A stretch of 64,000 nucleotides of DNA from Perna viridis (taxonomy: Eukaryota): positions 10,292,001 to 10,356,000 of the forward strand of contig CM074517.1 in the NCBI GenBank assembly GCA_037379345.1, in the 5' to 3' direction. Below the pieces are notes generated by a model that did not search any database, had not been told where the DNA came from, and worked only from the letters and a program-made list of their open reading frames with translations. Position numbers and translations under genes: made by a program. Shown here piece after piece: positions 8,825 through 41,000 of this stretch (position 1 is the stretch's first letter; every line of letters starts with the position of its first letter).

Positions 8825-8959
8825 ATGGCGGTGAATATTAAGATTGAGCCTTTACCGATGGACAGATACTCCCCCTTAACCATTAATGTCAATGCTATGG
8901 ACGATGACAAAGTTCAGAAACTGAAGAGAGATAGAAGAAGCAAACAGGATGGATTCCAT
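8825..8959 (+). CDS. TALE gene coding exon 1 (MAVNIKIEP...QDGFH)
   Basis: Acceptor ctttcttttcag ends at 8815, ATG at 8825, donor gtgagt at 8960; phase 0 matches the next exon. Confidence 0.75.
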
Positions 8960-11900
8960 GTGAGTATTTCATTCCAACTTTTGTTAAACCATTTCTTTTG
9001 CTTAAGTGCATGAGTGGCTTATGAAAGAAATTTAATTTGTTTGATATTTCTTCACATGAAATGTATTCAAACTCTTGTGCTTTAATTAGCAGGATTTTTA
9101 TGGATAACTGGTGAAACAGTTTCTGTCTGTGTACTTGTATTCTTCATGGTTATTTTTTTAACAGGCCCAAACTTTATTTTGGAGAATTTTTTTATAGAAA
9201 TTACTAGCTTATAGAGACTTTCACAAGCTCACCAGCATTATAACCATGTCTTTGTTTGATGTTCAGCAGACCAATGACCATCAGAATAACATGCATAGAT
9301 TTACAGACTTCATTAAAAAAATAAATGTATGTCTACATTTGTGTCTTAATGCAAGTACTCATGATGGGAATAAACTAAGAAAATAATTTTGAAATAGGCT
9401 GGGTACATATAGATTGAATTACGTGGTAAACAAGTTGATGAGGAGATGGTTTTGGGGGAAAAAAAGAGGTGGGATGAATGGAATAAAACAAGTTATAATC
9501 CACTTTAGATATTTCAGGTTGGCCCAATGCATTTGACTCACAGGAACATATACTGAACTCACGCTTGGTGATAATTGTTTACAAACTTCATGAACTTTAA
9601 TACATATATGATTAACATTCTGGTGTGTAAGCTTATATCAAAGTGTTAATATTGTCTTACCTCCTGTCAATGACATTTACATTTGTATTACTTTCTTGGT
9701 GGCATTCAGTGTGGTCATTCATGAATTTCTTCATCTTACAATGCAATGAAATGAAAAGGGAAAGCTTACACACTCCCAGTGGTACATGTATATCATCTCC
9801 CTTCATTAGTAATAGTCAAGTTACCAATGCTGTAAACAGTTGTTTAATTTTGTTGGAAAAATAAAACTGACAGGTATGTTATTATCATTATTATGAACTG
9901 AAATTGAGTGAAACTAAAAGAAAACTTGGATTTGACCATGATTTTTTAATTTTCTTCTCCCTAAATTTAAAGAATATACTTTATTCATGTTATATCTGGT
10001 CAAAAATAACCGTTGCCTTTGGGGAATTTGTCAATGAGAAATTCCAAGGAAAGTCATTTCAGTATTTTGCAGAGAATTCCAGAAAATCAAATGGATATTT
10101 ATCTGAATATTTTCATTAAGCTCAGGCCCATTTTAAGTCACCTTTGCCTTTTCTTTGTAGAGGTTTGTATCTTAACTAAGTTTTTGGAAGTTCCTAGTGA
10201 TTTGCATTTACTAGGGCTGTCTTTCTTATGAATGAATATTTTGTTATATCCAATTTGGTAAACTTTAACAAATTATTTGGAATCAATTACATAATTCCAA
10301 AAATATGAACACAATTTATTATAAAAGCGAATTAACTCTAGGATCAAGTTTATTCTCTTTAGTTGAAATCTTACTCTAGATCTGTCAACCCTTTTTTTAT
10401 TTGCTCTCTGATTCAAAATCTTACAAGTGGATTGAATTGTTATTTTAGGATATCTATAAGTGTTTATAAGGTCCCAACTTTCATCAGCTGTGAACTGATG
10501 CTCTCTTTTAATACAATTAGCAAGAAAAAATTGAAATTGAATAATTTTATATGTGATACAGTTGTTGATCCATTGCAATAAATTGATTGTGTGAAACTTC
10601 ATTTTTGTCATCCAATTCTCATTATCTTCCCATCATATCTATTTACATACGGATTTATGTGTTTGCACAAGTAGGATTTAATATTAGTGCAGAACTATCA
10701 TCAGGTAGCTTGATCAAATTTTTTTGTTGCAAGATATTTTACATTTTCTTTTTTAGTAAGCTCAGCCTATGAGGAGCTTGTTGATTTTCAGTCTGTCTGA
10801 TATGCCTTGAGAGAAGCTTACTGATTTCTTTGTCCAAGTTTCACTTTCTGTTCCATTCTTTTCAAATCATCAATAATTTTTTTTTTTTTTTTTTTTGGTT
10901 TTATTTCTAACTGCACTTATTCTAAAGAACAAAGAATTTTTTGGTCTTATATAGACATATTTTTATAGGTTGATTTTTTATGGCATGTTTAATATTATTG
11001 TGATAGTTTATAGACGGTAAACGAGTGGGATTGACCAAGTACAAAACCACTCAACTGGTACAGATTTTGTTCTGATATTTGATTGTTGTAATATACTGCC
11101 AACTTTAACCTCCTTTCAAGGTAAAACAGGTGATTAGCTTCTTAAATTCTGATTCTTTGATAAATAAAATTGCCTTTTATATAAATCCACTGTGTGTGAA
11201 GGCCTCTGGTATTTTTGTCATCATTCAAAAAGCATTAGCCTAACTGCACCTTAATAATCTCAAATGTTTACACAAGAGTTTACTAAAAAAAAGAATTTGG
11301 GTCCTTAGGTGAGTGGAAATGCAGTTGTGTTATAAATCTGTGTCCTTAGTATGCTCCATGGATTCTGTTTGAAATCTTTTGAAGGGAAGTTCAATTAGTG
11401 ATGAAATTCAGCATACAGTTTGATTTAAAAGTTATTGTCATTATGAATGTCAGAAACAACTTCCTATTAATAGCAATAAACTTTTTTATATTACATTTCA
11501 TTGTAGAAAGTTTCAAGTAAGATTTATAATGTAGGAATAAAGAGATGCAAGTTGTCTGAGACAAGTTTTCAATGACTACCAATGTTTTTTTTTATCTTGT
11601 ATATTTGAATTAGATAATGTAAGCTTTGTTTTTTACTGGAGTAAATTTTGTACGTTAGTTGCTGGAGTAGACAGTCTTTAGATAAGGTCAGTTTATGCAG
11701 TGTGCTTCAATAAGATATAATATTGTGGCTTAGAACATGATACTGAAGTTGTTCTTTATGTTTTGGGGTTTTAAGGTAGTATGTTTCTTGATTGAAACTT
11801 TCCTTACCCCAGCTTTTCTGGAGGTGTATATAGTGATCATGGTATCAGTCTGTCCATCTACAACTTTTTAGCTCACCTGGCCAATGACCATGTTAGCTAT

Positions 11901-29900: not shown

Positions 29901-32900
29901 TGTACATCCATTGTTATTTTGATAAACATCGTTGGAGAGCAGGTAGAAGAAAGACTAACAGAGGAACAGTCACAGCAGGATAGTGCATTTTATATCTTAA
30001 TTTGCACATTTAATTTCTTTATAAATATTCATGATGACTAATGCACTCTGGCCATCTCAGTAATTTAGCATAATTTGGAAATAAAACAGTAGGGTATGGA
30101 AGAGAAACCATGGACTAGATTTAAATACTCATAGAATGAGAATTTGATTCTGGTGCATGTAGAATATGTTTCATTGAATTACCACCTTTACAGCAAATTT
30201 CATTGATTTAGGTTTGACATTTCCATAATAATTTTGATGCTTTTTATACAATTGGAATAATGTAAAAATACAAAATTATTATCTAGATAATATCGAATGA
30301 AAGGAAGCTTGGCTGATATCAATTTGTAAAGAATTGCATGAAATTTACATTAAATGGTTGCATATTGATTGCACCCTGCATGAGTTGACTTCCGTTGGTT
30401 TGGAGAACACCACCTACATGCAGGCGCAGTACTGAATTGTTAAAACATTCATTTAAACATTGGTGAAAGGTCCTGAAAGGCAGGTTTCTTGTTTAGTTAC
30501 AATTTTCTTCAATTTAGTCCCTGCTGATACTATCTTTTGCTATCAGTTCTGAAATCTTAATGTTGAATTTAAACTGTTTTCATGCCTTTCAAACCATTAT
30601 CAAACTTCTGTTAGTGCAAAGTATAGAGTAGGCACAAGGCTTTAACATTTTAATAATGTTGCACTGTGTATTGATTTTTCCCAATGCCTAAATTGTAATT
30701 TGTATGAATTTCTATTAAAATGGTTTTCATCAATTTGCACATGTAAACAACTGTGGATGTGGTTACCATGAGAAATTGCTTGAGTACATTTGAACAATGT
30801 TTCCATTGATTAAAAAACTTCACTGGCTTGTATGTAGTAATGTTCTATTTAGGAACTTAGAAAAAAATAGTGTTCAAGGGTTTGGTTGAAAGATGTTTCA
30901 TTGTAAGTTAATTGACTTTTCCCAGTGTTTGGGTGCAGATATGCAGATGAATATTGATTACTGCTTATAATGTGGGTAATCACTGATATTTACAATCTAT
31001 TTAGAAGTTCTCTGATTTGATTTGATATTGATAATTTTTTTCAGAAAAGATTTTGTCTAGTATCAGTGGCAGGTAAAGCATAGAGAAAGTACTTGAGAAC
31101 TTTTGTATTTTGTTTTCAGAGAAGATTCGATCACGTCAGGAACAAGACAAGCACACTAAAAGTACCTCCAAATCCTTGAGCGCCATCGAAGAATTTTGTG
31201 AAAAGTTTGATAGATCTGTGAGAAACAGTGTTATCAAGGTTTGTTTTTAGATCTGTGAGAAACTGTGTTATAAATCAACCACATATTTTATCTTGGGTCC
31301 CGAAAAAAGAAGAATATTTGTGTTTGTTATTTTATTTCCTCCCATGTACATGTAGTTATGGCTTCCGTTTTATGGGTGATCTATTCAGCTGTGTCTGTAC
31401 ATCTGTCACCAAAGATGTTCTTATGTCTCATACCATCATATGTATGTTTTCTTTGGAAAATGAATTATATCTGTTTACTTAGACATGATTTTAAAACAGT
31501 CAAGACATAGACCTCCTAGTGACCTCTTCAGGACTTGCTGTCATGACACTGGTTTGGTACACCTTAACTGTGAGAAAAGGACCAAAATTATGTTGCCAAG
31601 CCCTGTATTTAGTCCATTATCGAGCTTTCTAGCACCTGTTGCTGTTAGTTTATAAGTAAAGTTTAGAAACAGTGCGATGATGTCTGTAAATTGTTGGTAG
31701 GAGTCTTACTAAGTCGGGAGGTTAACCAGTATCTATTCAACATGTGCTGACATGAATCTCAATCTGAAATGATTCACCGATTTATTCTGTGTTTCATGTT
31801 CAATGTAGCTAATAGTAAAACAGTTTTGTTATTACACCACCTAAAACGAGGATTTTGTTTCTGTTAACTTGTCTGCCAAATCCTGATATATGAGCTTCCG
31901 ATAGTTTTACAAATACTTAGAAATTTAAGTGATTATGCAGATGTTGCACAAAAATACATCGTATATAGAAGATTACTACTAGCAAGTGAAAAATAAGAAA
32001 AATTGAACTTTGTTCAATAGGATTTGTTTGAACTTGGTGTCAAAAAGAAAAGTATCCCCTGATGGTATGCCTGGCTGGACTTTTTTTGTTAAACTGTCAA
32101 TCACATGTAATACAAAGGTAGATTGAATAACCCTGGTTAGGCCAGATAACATTCACAATGTATTACCATTACTCGTTGTTGTGTGGTCTTCACATGATAA
32201 GTTCTCCGCCTTATTTATTCCGACTCAATGACCCATCAACTGACCAAGTGGGTATTGAATTGTCTGACGAAACTCCATCAGCCCTACGTAGGAATGCGAG
32301 TAATTTGATAATAAGGGGTCTGGCCACTGTGCAGTTTTATACAAAGTCATTAAAACATTTAATCAAACGATAAAATATCAGGTGGATGATTCATAGTTAA
32401 ATACACTCATGCTTTTCTTTCACTCCAGATCAATTATTTGTTTTTCATCACAGTTTTATATTTTGAATTGTATTTTGAGTAATGATCAATGTCTGTTTAA
32501 GAAATGTTGAATGTTTTTAAGAAAATATAAAGACTGACATGTTGTATAATGGAGTTTTGGGGGTTCTTCAACTTCCCAAGTATTCAAAAAAGTAATTTAA
32601 ATGTACTTCAGATAATCTTAAGTATCAACCCATGACATGTGACTTTCAGTCCTCAAGATTTAAAGTTTAGTTCACTGGGGGTATTCAGACCAAGTTTATT
32701 TTTCATGGAATCAAGGTTCTTTAATAATATTTACTTTCAAGACTTGCAAAGTTGAATGTATGAGACGTATATATAAAAATTGAGATAGATTGCGGATGCC
32801 ATATTGAATAACAGTTCAGGAGTCCAAATTTACTCTCAAAACCTGAAGGACCTGGATTTTTTCAATTTTAAGTTTCAAATCAGTGGTCCATTTGAATTAG

Positions 32901-35900: not shown

Positions 35901-38094
35901 GCAAAATACAACATACTAAAGATATTTTGTACCAAAAATATTTTAAAAAAGAAGTACACAAATAGTAAATATTAAATCTTTGATGTTTTGTCTTGTTGTA
36001 GCCTGCGACGTTCCAGGTTCCTAACTCCCAGAATCAGGTGACAACATCAATGGGAGGCCCGATGGTTCCGGGTATGACACAGATGGAAACACCCACCAAA
36101 GATCATAAATTTGTTCCTATGGATAACATGATGGTAGGACTTTCAACAGAAAACAAGTATTTTAATGCCGAAAACACCTGGATCTTGTCATTTATATATA
36201 AATATATTTTAGATCTTAACTCATCAATTTAATGAACAATCACAAATTTTTTTTAGAGAGATGTTTGCTGTTGTTCCCCCACACTCCCATGCTCTACAAT
36301 TACTGACTGAACTAAATCTCACACACTTAGAACAATACTTACATGAGCAAGATGTATGTAAAAGATGTTTAACGTCTTTGTCACATTCTAGTTATGATAT
36401 CATTTATATGATGTTTGCTAATGCAAAGTCATCTTAATGAAAGGTTTTGATAAACATTTAGAGATGTACATATGATTGTAAAAAAGATGATCAGGGTCCA
36501 GGACTTTAGTAGGTTTCAAATAAAAAAATCCTACTGATATAAGCTGTAGTTATTCAGTAGAGATTCAGTGTTTTGTTTTGAATGTGGACCAATGTTGATG
36601 AACTATTATAAGTCCTGAATCAGAAATGGAGGGTCTGGACCTCTGATCTACGCTAATTTGAACCCTGTTTATATTTATAAACTTTTCCATGAAAATAGTA
36701 AGAAATATAGATATAATGTTTTGATGTATTACAGATACAGGGTGGAATGTTTGCTTCTCCAATGGCCAAGAAGAACTTAGAACTGTCAGCTTTTGGTAGT
36801 CAGTTTAAATCATTAAAGGAAATATCAGAATACAATGACAATGGTAGTCTTGTTAGTAGCAGTAGTAACCATAGCAACAAATCTGAGTCAAAGAAACATC
36901 CAAGTTTACCAAAGGAGGTAAGAGTAACTGATATTATTCAGTTCAATGTTTGATTTACAAGTTTGAATGAAGAGTGATAGACATTATGTATTACATCAAA
37001 CAAATAGGTAACTTTCAATTTTAGACAAAATTTTTCAGTCCATCCTTGATTTTTACTGGTTTGGGCAAGGGCAGTACTCTATGGTAAGAGATGAAGTGAA
37101 TTATGCAAATGCTTCAATACGCATGGAAATGTCTATTTTGACTCAAAGGCGTGTAAGCATGAGTATTATTTGTAAATATTTGGTATTTCCTTATATTGAA
37201 AACTGTCACAAAATCAGTGAAAATGATAGTTGACATTTATTCATTGACCTATATATATAGGACAGATTCTACAGCAGCTGTTTATCAATCACTAATGTCA
37301 TTGACTGATATTGTCATGATAGTGGACACCCCTGGTGTTAATTATGACATCACATTGATAATGTGAGATCAACCCCACTGGCCAGTCTGTTTGTATATTA
37401 CTTTTTTTGGGGGGAAGTGGTAAAGGTCATTCTGTTATTGCTATTCTGTATTGAACTGTCTGAAGTTTTCTTTCCATACAAAAACTATATGGATACTACT
37501 CAAATTTTTCAGAATGGATGTAACTATACTCTAATAAATAGATCTATGCCTTAGTCTTCATAAACCCCAGGTCTGTCCCACAGGTTGCCTTAGTCTTCTA
37601 AATCCCAGGTCTGTCCCACAGGTTGCCTTAGTCTTCTTAAACCCCAGGTCTGCCCTATAGGTTGCCTTAGTCTTCTTAAGTCCCTGGTCTATCCCACAGG
37701 TTTGCTTAGACCATAAAATACCATTTCTGTTTTATTGTAGCTCCAGGTTTCTATATAGAAAAGCACAAACCACTGAGTGCCAAACTCAGTGATGATTGAT
37801 TTCTAAATTTTGCATGGGTCAGAACTTTTACATTGGATTGATAATCTCTATTAATTGATCACTAAATGATGATTCAACACAATGATATTTATAGGTAATT
37901 TGATTGGTTTTACTTTATAGGCTGTAGCTATTATGTTGGACTGGTTACGACAACACAAAGATAACCCATACCCAAATGATGATGAGAAAGCTATGCTCAT
38001 CAAACAGACAGGACTGACAATAAACCAAATCAATTATTGGTTCACCAATGCTAGAAGGAGAATCCTGCCAAAATGGGCTCAGCAGTGCAAATAA
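8825..38094 (+). CDS. Divergent TALE-class homeobox transcription factor (MEINOX-like domain plus TALE homeodomain), 6 coding exons, ~1042 aa
   Basis: GT-AG exons join in frame (135+2386+119+132+183+174 nt; intron phases 0,1,0,0,0). The protein contains HPLFPLL (MEIS/PKNOX HR1 motif) and the homeodomain [61 protein letters not shown] with the TALE PYP loop. Confidence 0.9.
11865..12477 (+). mobile_element. Helentron/HINE-like element, same family as 3505-6160
   Basis: tttttagctcacctgg ... ccaggtgagcg, hairpin aggttc-tggg-gaacct, then cttgttt. Confidence 0.75.
12968..13586 (+). mobile_element. HINE-like element with ~160-bp internal repeats (aggtcaaaggtcaaggtcac family)
   Basis: aaattggttt(c)cggag...aacttttg units at about 13022, 13155, 13312 and 13474; ends ctcttgtttt. 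Confidence 0.6.
15771..15802. repeat. (ATTT)8 microsatellite
   Basis: Direct reading. Confidence 0.9.
19085..19960 (+). mobile_element. Degenerate HINE-like repeat with internal ~150-bp units
   Basis: Repeated aaggtgcca...ggaag...gattgatttt units; the 3' end (aactgtatc.ag.ttgaatggtgtatcca...gggttcaa) is shared with 6620-6690. Confidence 0.5.
23781..26166 (+). CDS. TALE gene coding exon 2 (2386 nt; S/P/T-rich then M/Q/N/G-rich region, start of MEINOX-like domain)
   Basis: 811-aa ORF in the track; acceptor tttttag ends at 23780; donor gtatgt at 26167; encodes [11 protein letters not shown]. Confidence 0.93.
28239..29046 (+). mobile_element. HINE-like element carrying four ~160-bp satellite-type monomers
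   Basis: tttttatgcccc ... ggggcat inverted repeat; gtcc microsatellite near the 5' end; monomers at about 28318, 28477, 28638 and 28799; 3' hairpin tgtgtct-cac-agacaca. Confidence 0.8.
29290..29552. repeat. AT-rich foldback element with ~60-bp imperfect arms and internal subrepeats
   Basis: atttaataatttttatttgaatgtaa... / ...ttacattcaaatgaaaattattaaat. Confidence 0.65.
31120..31238 (+). CDS. TALE gene coding exon 3 (EKIRSRQEQ...[19 protein letters not shown])
   Basis: Acceptor ttttcag, phase-1 join, donor gtttgt; resembles the second half of the MEIS-B/HR2 helix. Confidence 0.85.
36002..36133 (+). CDS. TALE gene coding exon 4 (PATFQVPN...PMDNMM)
   Basis: Acceptor ttgtag, donor gtagga, 132 nt open, phase 0/0, GC-richer than flanks. 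Confidence 0.8.
36735..36917 (+). CDS. TALE gene coding exon 5 (start of homeodomain, ...[10 protein letters not shown])
   Basis: Tandem in-frame acceptors ending at 36734 and 36740; donor gtaaga at 36918. Confidence 0.87.
37548..37709. repeat. 39-bp minisatellite, ~4 units
   Basis: Unit gccttagtcttcttaaaccccaggtctgtcccacaggtt at 37548, 37587, 37625 and 37664. Confidence 0.93.
37921..38094 (+). CDS. TALE gene terminal exon (homeodomain helices 1-3, stop TAA)
   Basis: Acceptor ctttatag; translates [18 protein letters not shown]...[18 protein letters not shown]. This exon is missing from the ORF track. Confidence 0.95.
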
Positions 38095-41000
38095 TCCCAT
38101 ACTTAGTATGAAATACCATTTGGTCAAGCTGCAGCTAAAGATAAAATTAATACAATGTAACTTTTGTGCCTGTATGAATTACTTATGCAGAGTAATTTTT
38201 TCTGTGGAAAATTATTTTTGTGCCTATTTGAACTATTTATGCAATAAGGTTGTTATCACAAAAGAGATTTTTTATTGTTCAGCATTTATTTTTGTTGTTC
38301 CAAATCTGATTATTAAAAAGACGGTTGTTTATAGTTGAGTATTTTTATAGGATTTTTTTAAAACAATGTGAGAATACTTGGAGTTAAGTTAATATTGTTT
38401 CCTTGTCAGTACAAAGCAGTGAAACTGCCTGTTTTTTTGTGTTGTAAAATATATGGATAGTTCAGATGCATTAATTTCCCCCCATATTTGAAAAAAATGG
38501 AAGTACAATATTTCTTTTTCCCGCCAGGGCTTTTCATTAACAAGGTTCTTGTAATTTGTAGTTTGCAGTGAAAGTTTTTTTTTTCTTTTTTAATGTTTTC
38601 AAACCAATATTCATTGTTATACATCTATTTTTCAACAGGTTAAGATTCACTTCATAGTTTTTTATTTGTTAGAGCTTTATTAAGTCTTTTCGGTGATTCC
38701 AGCACCATTCACAAGCAACTATGGGTTTAATTTCTGCTTTAAAATGCTGTTTCTTACCATTTCTATTTCTAAAAACAGATGAAGTTATTATAATCATTAG
38801 TGTAACATCAGGCATTAAGAGTTAGTTTTCCATAGAAACAATGTGTTCGCTTCCAAATTGTTTCCATGACAATTACCATTAGTGCTTATTATTGTAATTG
38901 GTTTGCTTATGCATGAATTGATTGCGTACTTTGTACTTCCATTTTGTCCACAGGACAGGAGTATTATTTTTTATATATAAATTGGTGTGTTAAGCTTTTA
39001 TATCCAATATGGTATTCTATCAAAAAGAAACTTTTCTTTACTGTAAAGTATTCCAGAGAACAATGCTTCTTCATCTTGATGGGTTATTAATTTATTTTAT
39101 TAAAACAGAGCTTGTTACTAAACATTAATAGATTCCAGTTCTTTGACATATCCTTTTATGAATGAAATGGCTTGATTGTGTAAAGGGAGATAACTGAAGT
39201 GTAAAATATGAACTGCTCACATTCAGCTGAAGAGCTTTCATTTTAAAGAAAATGCCAAGGTGATGTACATAGTAAATACCTTAAACAGTTAGTGCCTTTT
39301 ATACATGTACATAGTTATTGTTGTTTTTTTGTATGATTTTGTAAATAGATAAAATATTATATTGGTAGTTATTGTTTTAATGGAAATTATATCTGTGTCA
39401 CATTAGTTGCAAGGTATTGTTTTATGTTTAATGTTATTTTAAGTAATGTGAGTATTGGGAAATAGATATTGCCATCTTACAATCATACTCTGTACAAGAT
39501 TCCAGATTTTAAAGGTGTTTCTTCTACAAATATCTTCTGCAATTTGCAAGATGCTTCTGTTTGACAAAGAACAATGTGTTTTGGCTGGCTATTCATTTAG
39601 AAATAGCTTAGTTTAATAATTAATTGTTGTGCTGCTGTTTTGAGTTAAATTAATAGTTCTGTATACATTTTGAGGGGAGAAAAAAATCACTGTACAGTAA
39701 ATGAAGTTGAATGAAACTTAATTTATCATTTATTACTGGTTGTTTTTTTTTGTTTTTTGTTTTAGTTTTTGTTTGTGTAGTATCTGTTTCCTAATGGTCA
39801 TGTGATACATTAGAGATGTGATGATGTCAGATTTTTATATGAACAAAGTATATGGTGCATGCACTAAGCTATATAATGGCCACTTTTATTTTGAGATTGT
39901 ATAGTGTGATTGTGTACGTGTTACAGTATTATTTTTTTTCTTTATTTTCTAAATACTCTCTCTCTCTTACTCTATATCTTTCAGTTACTTGTATTTTATG
40001 GGAACATGAAACAATTATATGTTTCAATGGGAGTTGTTTGTCAAATGAATGTTTTTCAACAGAATTTTCTGCCAATGAGAAAAAAAGTTAACATTTTATT
40101 TAAATTTAAATCATGAGATTTTTAGATTTGTAATTTGATAGTTACTTGCAAAGTTTTATGGCTTCAGTTTGAATTTGGAATTGAATTTGTAAGATGTTCT
40201 GACATACTCGACAATCTGCTGTTTGCTTATTATTGGAAATTTTAAATATTAAATGGCCACTTTTTGGTCTGCTTTCAAATATCTTAAAAAGAATCTGACA
40301 GTTCTCCTTGGATATGTATTTTCTACCATTTAGAATTAGCTCCGTTACTATTTTTTTAATAAACAAAATGAACCCATGGACAATAATAAATGTTGCACAG
40401 TTTGACAAATTGACAGTACTTAGATGAAATATTTATGTGGTTTACCTAGGAGTAGTCATGAAAAATTAGATTGTCAGTAAACTGTTAGCTATTGAAGAAT
40501 TCCAATATTTTGTTGTGCAGATATTCCTGTGTTAGGAAAATTTTGATACGATGATTAGTACAAGTATGGTTAAAAATTGGTATATAAAAACAGCATCTGG
40601 GTTTTTATTGTTGTGCTTATCTCATTTCAAAACTGCAATATAACTGTCTATTTTTTTTTTTTTCTGTGATTGAACCACCCTCTCTGGTTATTATGAATAG
40701 CTATATTGATCCAATTTACAATACATTCATCATACAAGCAATGTTTTGGTTATTATAGATATTAACTACAAAGATCTCAATTCGTTTGTATGTTATTTTG
40801 TATTCTGTCACTTCATGTTGCACTGTCTAAAGTGTCAGAAATTGGGACATCAAAACCATGTACTTAAAACAACAGTAAATTCTACACTTATTGTTTACAA
40901 GCAATATTTTCACATCTAACTACATTTTTTCAAACTATTGCAAAAAAAATTCATGTTTTCTCCAAATTTTACTTCATATCATTGGTAAGTCAGCTTTAAA

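Follow-up and report, generated by a model that had tools for sequence, protein, structure and literature searches.

The window analysed in this study is a stretch of 64,000 nucleotides from the mussel Perna viridis (assembly GCA_037379345.1, contig CM074517.1, positions 10,292,001 to 10,356,000 of the forward strand), with no N anywhere in it. Its plus strand carries a gene of six coding exons (8825-38094; 3126 coding bases or 1042 codons, as the sum of the exon lengths), the last two of which encode a TALE homeodomain with His at position 5, Tyr at position 47 and Thr at position 50, residues that an initial annotation of the same DNA had singled out as a rewired recognition code. The gene is the single-copy mussel orthologue of a published non-SPILE family, TALE Clade I or TALE-I, to which the oyster gene Cgi_TALE2 belongs. 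As a whole the locus is best explained, with a high degree of confidence, as an expressed six-exon TALE-I gene for a four-part protein which would act as a transcription factor. From the N-terminus onward this protein has an acidic motif, a long region rich in Gln and Pro, a strongly conserved domain of some 130 residues and, at the C-terminus, the TALE homeodomain.

The gene model comes from a tblastn mapping of the full-length Mytilus trossulus protein P0003 to the window, with the splice sites read from the sequence; searches were run exon by exon and not with a joined spliced protein, P0003 serving as the full-length proxy. Exon 1 (8825-8959, 45 codons) starts with the ATG at 8825, ends in the residues GFH before the donor GTGAGT at 8960 and was placed with P0003 residues 2-47. 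The large exon 2 (23781-26166), covered by an open reading frame at 23784-26219, follows an acceptor AG at 23779-80, matches P0003 residues 45-861 and ends at a phase 1 donor, AG followed by GTATGT. It encodes a Gln/Pro/Ser-rich low-complexity stretch and, within it at 23916-24011, the acidic N-terminal motif, which is partly invariant across 14 orthologues from four phyla (N95, L97, L98, E100, D104, G106 and D114 in the numbering of P0003). The end of exon 2 (25890-26166) and exon 3 (31120-31238, beginning EKIRSRQ, placed by tblastn with its splice sites read) encode parts A and B of the conserved family domain, and exon 4 (36002-36133, placed by tblastn) is a poorly conserved linker. Exon 5 (36735-36917) gives with its last 11 codons (36885-36917) residues 1-11 of the homeodomain, its N-terminal arm. 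An intron of 1003 nt (36918-37920, phase 0) then separates homeodomain residues 11 and 12; it begins with GTAAGA, ends with TTTATAG and contains a tandem repeat of a 39-bp unit in 4.2 copies (87% matches) at 37547-37709. Exon 6 (37921-38094) encodes residues 12-63 (to 38076), a tail of five residues and the stop codon at 38092-38094, after which comes the 3' untranslated region. GT..AG ends were read for each of the five introns that separate the coding exons, and the frames are open in all exons.

Transcript-like contigs of about 7 kb from the runs X1, X2 and X4, which belong to three studies, skip exactly 36134-36734 and 36918-37920, both with GT..AG borders, so that position 36133 of exon 4 is joined to position 36735 of exon 5; at 36000 their upstream loose end is the end of the exon 3 sequence. 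The RNA nature of these runs was guessed; spliced contigs, however, can arise from RNA only. Since the contigs are spliced at two joints, the gene is transcribed and spliced as modelled. The contigs over 37919-38300 extend about 3.6 kb past 38300, which suggests a long 3' untranslated region from position 38095 of the window onward. Position 36094 in exon 4 is T in the X1 and X2 contigs and C in the assembly and X4, and looks like an allelic difference.

The homeodomain comprises 63 residues encoded by 36885-36917 and 37921-38076. It begins with Glu1 at 36885, one base later than the start at 36884 given in the initial annotation. With the numbering anchored on Leu8, which corresponds to Phe8 of typical homeodomains, and on Trp48, the codons of His5 (CAT, 36897-36899), Tyr47 (TAT, 38035-38037) and Thr50 (ACC, 38044-38046) were read in the plus strand just as they had been annotated, and Trp48, Phe49, Asn51, Arg53, Arg54, Arg55 and the PYP loop are all intact, helix 3 containing YWFTNARRR. 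The domain has the features of the TALE superclass, namely an insertion of three residues between helix 1 and helix 2, with the P-Y-P motif, in exon 6, and a helix 3 with Trp48, Phe49, Asn51 and Arg53. Taken by itself, the last exon matches Pfam Homeobox_KN (PF05920) with E 3.4e-20 over the full 40-position model, and its best matches among solved structures are MEIS2, PKNOX1 and TGIF1 (E about 5e-14 to 5e-13). With matches of this strength the homeodomain call is not due to chance, and the gene contains a genuine, expressed TALE homeodomain. The residues which the initial annotation had given for the canonical families hold in the mussel's own genome, where Tgif has Asn47 and Ile50, position 47 is Asn in both Meis and Pknox, and position 50 is Ala in Irx and Mkx. 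Among the 30 TALE and SIX loci fetched from that genome, the present one is alone in having Tyr47 or Thr50.

The family to which this homeodomain belongs was named TALE Clade I in Paps et al. 2015 (with Cgi_TALE2 = CGI_10008335 and a clade support of 99%) and TALE-I in Barton-Owen et al. 2018 (PMC6118893), who counted clades I-III among the robust ones and called the non-canonical TALE transcripts including TALE-I A and B, which are present in Spirobranchus regeneration transcriptomes, non-SPILE. In the oyster, TALE2 belongs to the novel TALE genes that are active between the egg and the blastula stage (PMC5322547). In the alignment of PMC6118893 (supplementary file 11), the mussel homeodomain is identical to oyster Cg_LTCI_TALE2 at 62 of 63 residues, the only difference being an Asp/Glu exchange, and the signature of helix 3 and the tail is common to the TALE-I rows La, Pv, Sl, Ct, Hr and Lg shown there, with the exception of Lingula, which has Val50. 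Like the published members, the mussel gene has the KKHPSLPKE arm together with this helix 3 and tail, is non-SPILE, and belongs to a family that is usually single-copy. A scan of the whole genome with PF05920 gave 38 matches, and the window locus (C7:10.33 Mb) is the sole one with this helix 3. Consequently, of the two possibilities offered by the initial annotation, a spiralian TALE clade or an unnamed family, the first corresponds to a published clade, and the second falls away because the family was already named in 2015 and 2018.

Membership is also seen outside the homeodomain. A word search with the end of exon 2 gave full-length proteins of 900-1350 residues which carry Homeobox_KN and come from bivalves, gastropods, Lingula, the bryozoan Watersipora and Capitella, the top match being M. 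trossulus with 99%; a second search, with the homeodomain of P0003 as the query, added a cephalopod, Owenia, Dimorphilus, the orthonectid Intoshia and the nemertean Lineus. The N-terminal motif, the upstream domain and the homeodomain are colinear in 14 orthologues, and to this architecture are added the single locus and two shared intron positions described below. The automatic names that NCBI gives to proteins of this family (P0003, P0040, P0046, P0017 and P0125) are misleading and include 'myb-like protein AA', 'trithorax group protein osa', 'hornerin', 'GATA zinc finger domain-containing protein 14-like' and 'homeobox protein Meis1-like'; the Gln/Pro-rich low-complexity region is the probable cause.

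The domain upstream of the homeodomain, encoded by the end of exon 2 and exon 3 and about 130 residues long, is called here the HPLFPLL domain after its core motif. It is about 90% identical between the mussel and the abalone Haliotis, and is apparently both strongly conserved and previously undescribed. Apart from PADRE, Paps et al. 2015 reported that the novel TALE genes have no large companion domain, and literature searches on 'Atale', on TALE-I with MEINOX and on Priapulus TALE gave no paper in which TALE-I is connected with a companion domain or with animals outside the lophotrochozoans. In its first seven residues the core motif agrees fully with the start of the MEIS/PREP domain in the mussel's own Meis and Pknox. 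When the domain was aligned to these two by hhalign, 9 columns were matched with a probability of 81% (P 1.2e-5), and the second half of the domain resembled the second part of Meis/Pknox weakly (P 0.008). Pfam gave no match on exon 2 or exon 4, Meis_PKNOX_N (PF16493) was absent from exon 2 at E<=1, and in the whole genome at E<=10 this model matched only Meis and Pknox and nothing in the window. Judged from these alignments, the domain appears MEINOX-like at the level of the motif only, and since nothing but this motif aligns with Meis/Pknox, the gene is not filed under the MEIS class. By analogy with the PBX-binding MEIS/PREP domain, the HPLFPLL domain would most likely serve as a protein-interaction surface. 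A PBC lead for Priapulus residues 395-540 (Protein Atlas, language model; score 0.75, sub-threshold) was not used as evidence, and L002, the contig of P0079, was set aside with no homeodomain in the 4.5 kb after its domain exon.

A profile of the HPLFPLL domain, built from 5 sequences (the window and four metagenomic loci), was searched against 1.84 billion representative proteins and gave 104 clusters at E<=1e-3, which belonged to this family wherever they were checked. Of the weaker matches, 10 were checked by Pfam and 20 by source name, 9 of the 10 being among the 20; Meis_PKNOX_N was absent from all 10 that were scanned, and none of those checked looked like MEIS/PKNOX, one Penaeus entry bearing the automatic name 'Meis1-like'. 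By source name these matches include Priapulus caudatus (XP_014666189), the decapods Penaeus, Panulirus, Cherax, Procambarus and Petrolisthes, and Branchiostoma floridae (XP_035657441). The Priapulus protein has an HPLFPLL-type domain and a C-terminal homeodomain that keeps Tyr47 and Thr50. The full-length decapod proteins also have both domains, with Gln or His at position 47 and mostly Thr50; the two Petrolisthes matches are short models checked by name only. In BLASTP, M. trossulus P0003 gave two colinear matches to the Priapulus protein (2e-24 and 9e-21, with 61% in the homeodomain) and one match of 303 residues spanning both domains to that of Panulirus (9e-36). Furthermore, two intron positions are common to the mussel, the annelid-like contig L001, Priapulus (L043) and Panulirus (L042): the first, in phase 1, lies in the codon just before K(I/V) after the AH..L(I/L/M) motif of the domain, and the second, in phase 0, between homeodomain residues 11 and 12. 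At the latter, conserved position the intron of Panulirus ornatus (L042:17350-18505) apparently has a GC donor, GAG followed by GCGAGT.

The amphioxus protein has an HPLFPLL-type domain (AIFPLLRDI...) at E 1.2e-14, and its gene lies at 10001-16959 of L041 (Branchiostoma floridae CM022901.1), with the domain intron at another place than in the protostomes. No homeodomain was found in the gene model or within 10 kb downstream, so amphioxus seems to possess a homologue without one. A word search with the Priapulus homeodomain returned family members only and no further phyla. A protein filed under a rhizarian parasite of crabs (P0141/P0161; NCBI MES1903079.1, labelled as a metagenome-assembled genome of Paramarteilia canceri) is Asn-rich and has the same domain followed by a TALE homeodomain with Asn47 and Thr50; it could be animal contamination or a real non-animal member. 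The Priapulus and decapod orthologues and the amphioxus homologue contradict the published statement that these genes are 'only found in the Lophotrochozoa' (Paps et al. 2015). The clade was indeed described from spiralians, but it is not the lineage-specific clade that the initial annotation had thought possible. It can be said with good confidence that the family is older than the lophotrochozoan-ecdysozoan split, and with less confidence that it is bilaterian. A survey of decapod TALE genes placed all of them in the six classical families (PMC5968366), and since it used only these families, the decapod TALE-I genes seem to have been overlooked there.

The conservation of the flagged residues was counted in 24 distinct homeodomains of the family. 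Position 5 is His in 13, Lys in 4, Asn in 2 and another residue in 5; position 47 is Tyr in 17, Gln in 3, His in 2 and Asn in 2; position 50 is Thr in 21, Ile in 2 and Val in 1; Asn51, Arg53, Arg54 and Arg55 are present in 24/24. Tyr47 occurs in all of the molluscs, annelids, brachiopod, bryozoan, nemertean and orthonectid sampled and in Priapulus, and the homeodomain hardly differs, if at all, between bivalves, gastropods and one cephalopod. Tyr47 and Thr50 are therefore family signatures, conserved family-wide, and the possibility that relatives of the mussel gene would lack them does not hold. His5, which is found in molluscs, brachiopod, bryozoan, nemertean and orthonectid and gives way to Asn or Lys in annelids and to Asn in Priapulus, is less constant than the other two.

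As for DNA recognition, base 4 of a homeodomain site is contacted from positions 47 and 54, and the bases after it from position 50 (Chu et al. 2012, PMC3460184). In TGIF1 (6FQP), the base contacts to TGACA are made by Arg220 and Arg221 (positions 54 and 55) and Arg219 lies on the backbone; for Ile216 (position 50) the one contact mentioned is a water-mediated one to the backbone, and in the arm Arg165 and Arg167 contact DNA and Arg168 does not (PMC6158717). When the mussel homeodomain is aligned to TGIF1, His5 corresponds to Arg168, and Ser2 and Lys4 to the contacting Arg165 and Arg167. The gene product would be a sequence-specific nuclear transcription factor with helix 3 in the major groove. 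The invariant residues Asn51, Arg54 and Arg55 make a TGAC-like core of the TGIF and MEIS kind the most likely outcome, and Tyr47 and Thr50, whose positions are known to contact bases 4-6 of homeodomain sites, probably give a family-specific preference at its flank. The less basic arm (SKKH, against RRRR in TGIF) probably weakens the reading of the minor groove. The altered DNA specificity expressed by the term 'rewired recognition code' is a plausible hypothesis, but Arg54 and Arg55, with which TGIF1 reads TGACA, are kept.

The explanation that competes most seriously with a flank preference is that the domain binds canonical TGACA just as MEIS, PKNOX and TGIF do, and that Tyr47 and Thr50 are tolerated or serve protein contacts. 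The invariance of Asn51, Arg53, Arg54 and Arg55 in all members counted, the way in which TGIF1 reads TGACA by Arg220 and Arg221 while for its Ile216 only a water-mediated backbone contact is mentioned (PMC6158717), and the decapods, which vary at position 47 and in two cases revert to Ile50, are all in keeping with it. Nevertheless, molluscs, annelids, bryozoans, nemerteans and priapulids have kept Tyr47 and Thr50 since they diverged, and positions 47 and 50 are established determinants of specificity (PMC3460184), so canonical binding is regarded as a tentative alternative of appreciable weight and not as the preferred one.

Much less can be said for the reading that the gene is simply the mussel's divergent orthologue of MEIS, PKNOX or TGIF, although the best solved-structure matches are MEIS2, PKNOX1 and TGIF1, the HPLFPLL motif is like that of MEIS/PREP and the Penaeus relative is called 'Meis1-like' by NCBI. 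The genome has its own canonical Tgif at C1:47.77 Mb (RKRRGNLPKE arm, YNAYP, VCNWFINARRR, Asn47/Ile50), its own Meis at C2:57.18-57.21 Mb (Asn47; Meis_PKNOX_N E 1.3e-19) and its own Pknox at C5:47.95 Mb (Asn47; Meis_PKNOX_N E 1.6e-17), as well as Irx and Mkx genes (Ala50), among which, at C5:36.03-36.07 Mb (L003, L009, L010 and L011), four Irx/Mkx-like TALE homeoboxes stand within about 35 kb. TGIF (the own Tgif at G000:C1; human TGIF1, PDB 6FQP) shares with the mussel gene the LPKE at the start of helix 1, the NARRR(I/L)LP after helix 3 and a common clade. It differs in its basic arm (RRRGNLPKE), its YNAYP loop and its helix 3 with Asn47 and Ile50, the present gene departing from TGIF at each of these, and in being a short protein without the HPLFPLL domain and, in the mussel's own genome, without an intron at residues 11/12. 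MEIS and PKNOX (PREP) have the same order of parts, an N-terminal domain starting (S/R)HPLFPLL followed by a C-terminal TALE homeodomain with NARRRI, and their homeodomains in PDB match that of the mussel at about 5e-14; they differ in that the Pfam model of the MEIS N-terminal domain, Meis_PKNOX_N, is unmatched in the present gene, with 9 profile columns only aligned, in residues 47 and 50 (Tyr/Thr against Asn/Ile) and in the position of the introns, those of the own Meis and Pknox homeodomains falling after Trp48, and they are represented by separate genes elsewhere in the genome. The PBC (PBX) class does not apply either, PF03792 having no match and Thr50 standing in place of Gly50. Thus the separate Tgif, Meis, Pknox, Irx and Mkx loci bear out the claim that the gene fits none of the six canonical families, and they refute an ordinary or divergent MEIS, PKNOX or TGIF orthologue, which is very improbable.

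Equally improbable is a fast-evolving, lineage-restricted gene of the SPILE type (Morino et al. 2017; TALE clades III, IV, XV, XVII and XVIII), which resembles TALE-I as a non-canonical TALE first described in spiralians. Many such genes are present in the mussel genome, including three TALE-IV-type genes with two homeodomains at C8:7.54/7.68 Mb and C14:4.88 Mb (L012, L016 and L014). However, SPILE genes differ in having Ala50 and Lys or Ser at position 47, in some cases with PADRE domains or two homeodomains, and in evolving fast, whereas the present gene has no second homeodomain, its homeodomain is identical or nearly identical across bivalves, gastropods and the cephalopod, TALE-I transcripts were described as non-SPILE (Barton-Owen 2018), and orthologues occur outside Spiralia. 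Maximum-likelihood analysis of 41 homeodomains (tree 1), resting like the second tree on 63 columns, too few to resolve more, and made without the published reference homeodomains of the PMC6118893 supplement, also placed the SPILE homeodomains (WFANKRNR type) in a separate clade (100/99); the tree and the conservation together refute this reading. Lastly, for a decaying or untranscribed copy no point in favour was found, and the open frames in all exons, the GT..AG introns, the spliced 7-kb contigs from three studies and a homeodomain exon 100% identical to that of M. trossulus make it hardly conceivable.

In the same tree 1, the TALE-I family and the own Tgif form one clade (96/94), with Irx/Mkx (93/88) apart as well. 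In tree 2, to which Meis and Pknox were added as single-exon partial rows only, one clade (77/88) unites the lophotrochozoan members with Priapulus; the decapods come out next to it as a sister group with weak support, and Tgif, Meis and Pknox branch outside. Over both trees, the family stands with Tgif, Meis and Pknox, away from Irx/Mkx and from SPILE. Several points weigh against the explanation given here for the locus. The homeodomain alone separates the family from Tgif at just 62/73 in tree 1, and tree 2 does not recover the family as one clade, its monophyly not being rejected (approximately unbiased test, p 0.433). None of 20 family members matched the Pfam models Meis_PKNOX_N, KNOX or PBC at E<=10, and the MEINOX analogy rests on the match of 9 columns. 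The decapod orthologues have Gln or His for Tyr47 and two have Ile50, so the Tyr47/Thr50 pair is not indispensable. In addition, both the 'TGAC-like core' and the 'altered flank' are inferred.

With these points weighed, we lean on balance towards a broader proposal: TALE-I may be a seventh ancient TALE family, at least protostome-wide and possibly bilaterian, with its own recognition helix, ancestrally Tyr47/Thr50, and with the HPLFPLL domain as a divergent MEINOX-type partner-binding module, which would have been lost in insects, nematodes and vertebrates and have become homeodomain-less in amphioxus. The literature on TALE-I classes its members by the homeodomain alone, knows no large companion domain and dates the family to the Trochozoa/Lophotrochozoa, whereas the present analysis finds a full-length architecture, a conserved upstream domain, shared introns and members outside the lophotrochozoans.

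The flagged homeodomain is accordingly not a new kind but a further member of a family named in 2015 and 2018, and what is added to the published family is the companion domain together with a broader distribution. The conservation of Tyr47 and Thr50 reaches back beyond the priapulid-spiralian split, so the family offers a natural test of what positions 47 and 50 contribute to TALE specificity. Furthermore, what had looked like the novelty of one lineage becomes an old gene that has disappeared from all main model animals, and this loss would explain the lack of functional knowledge on it.

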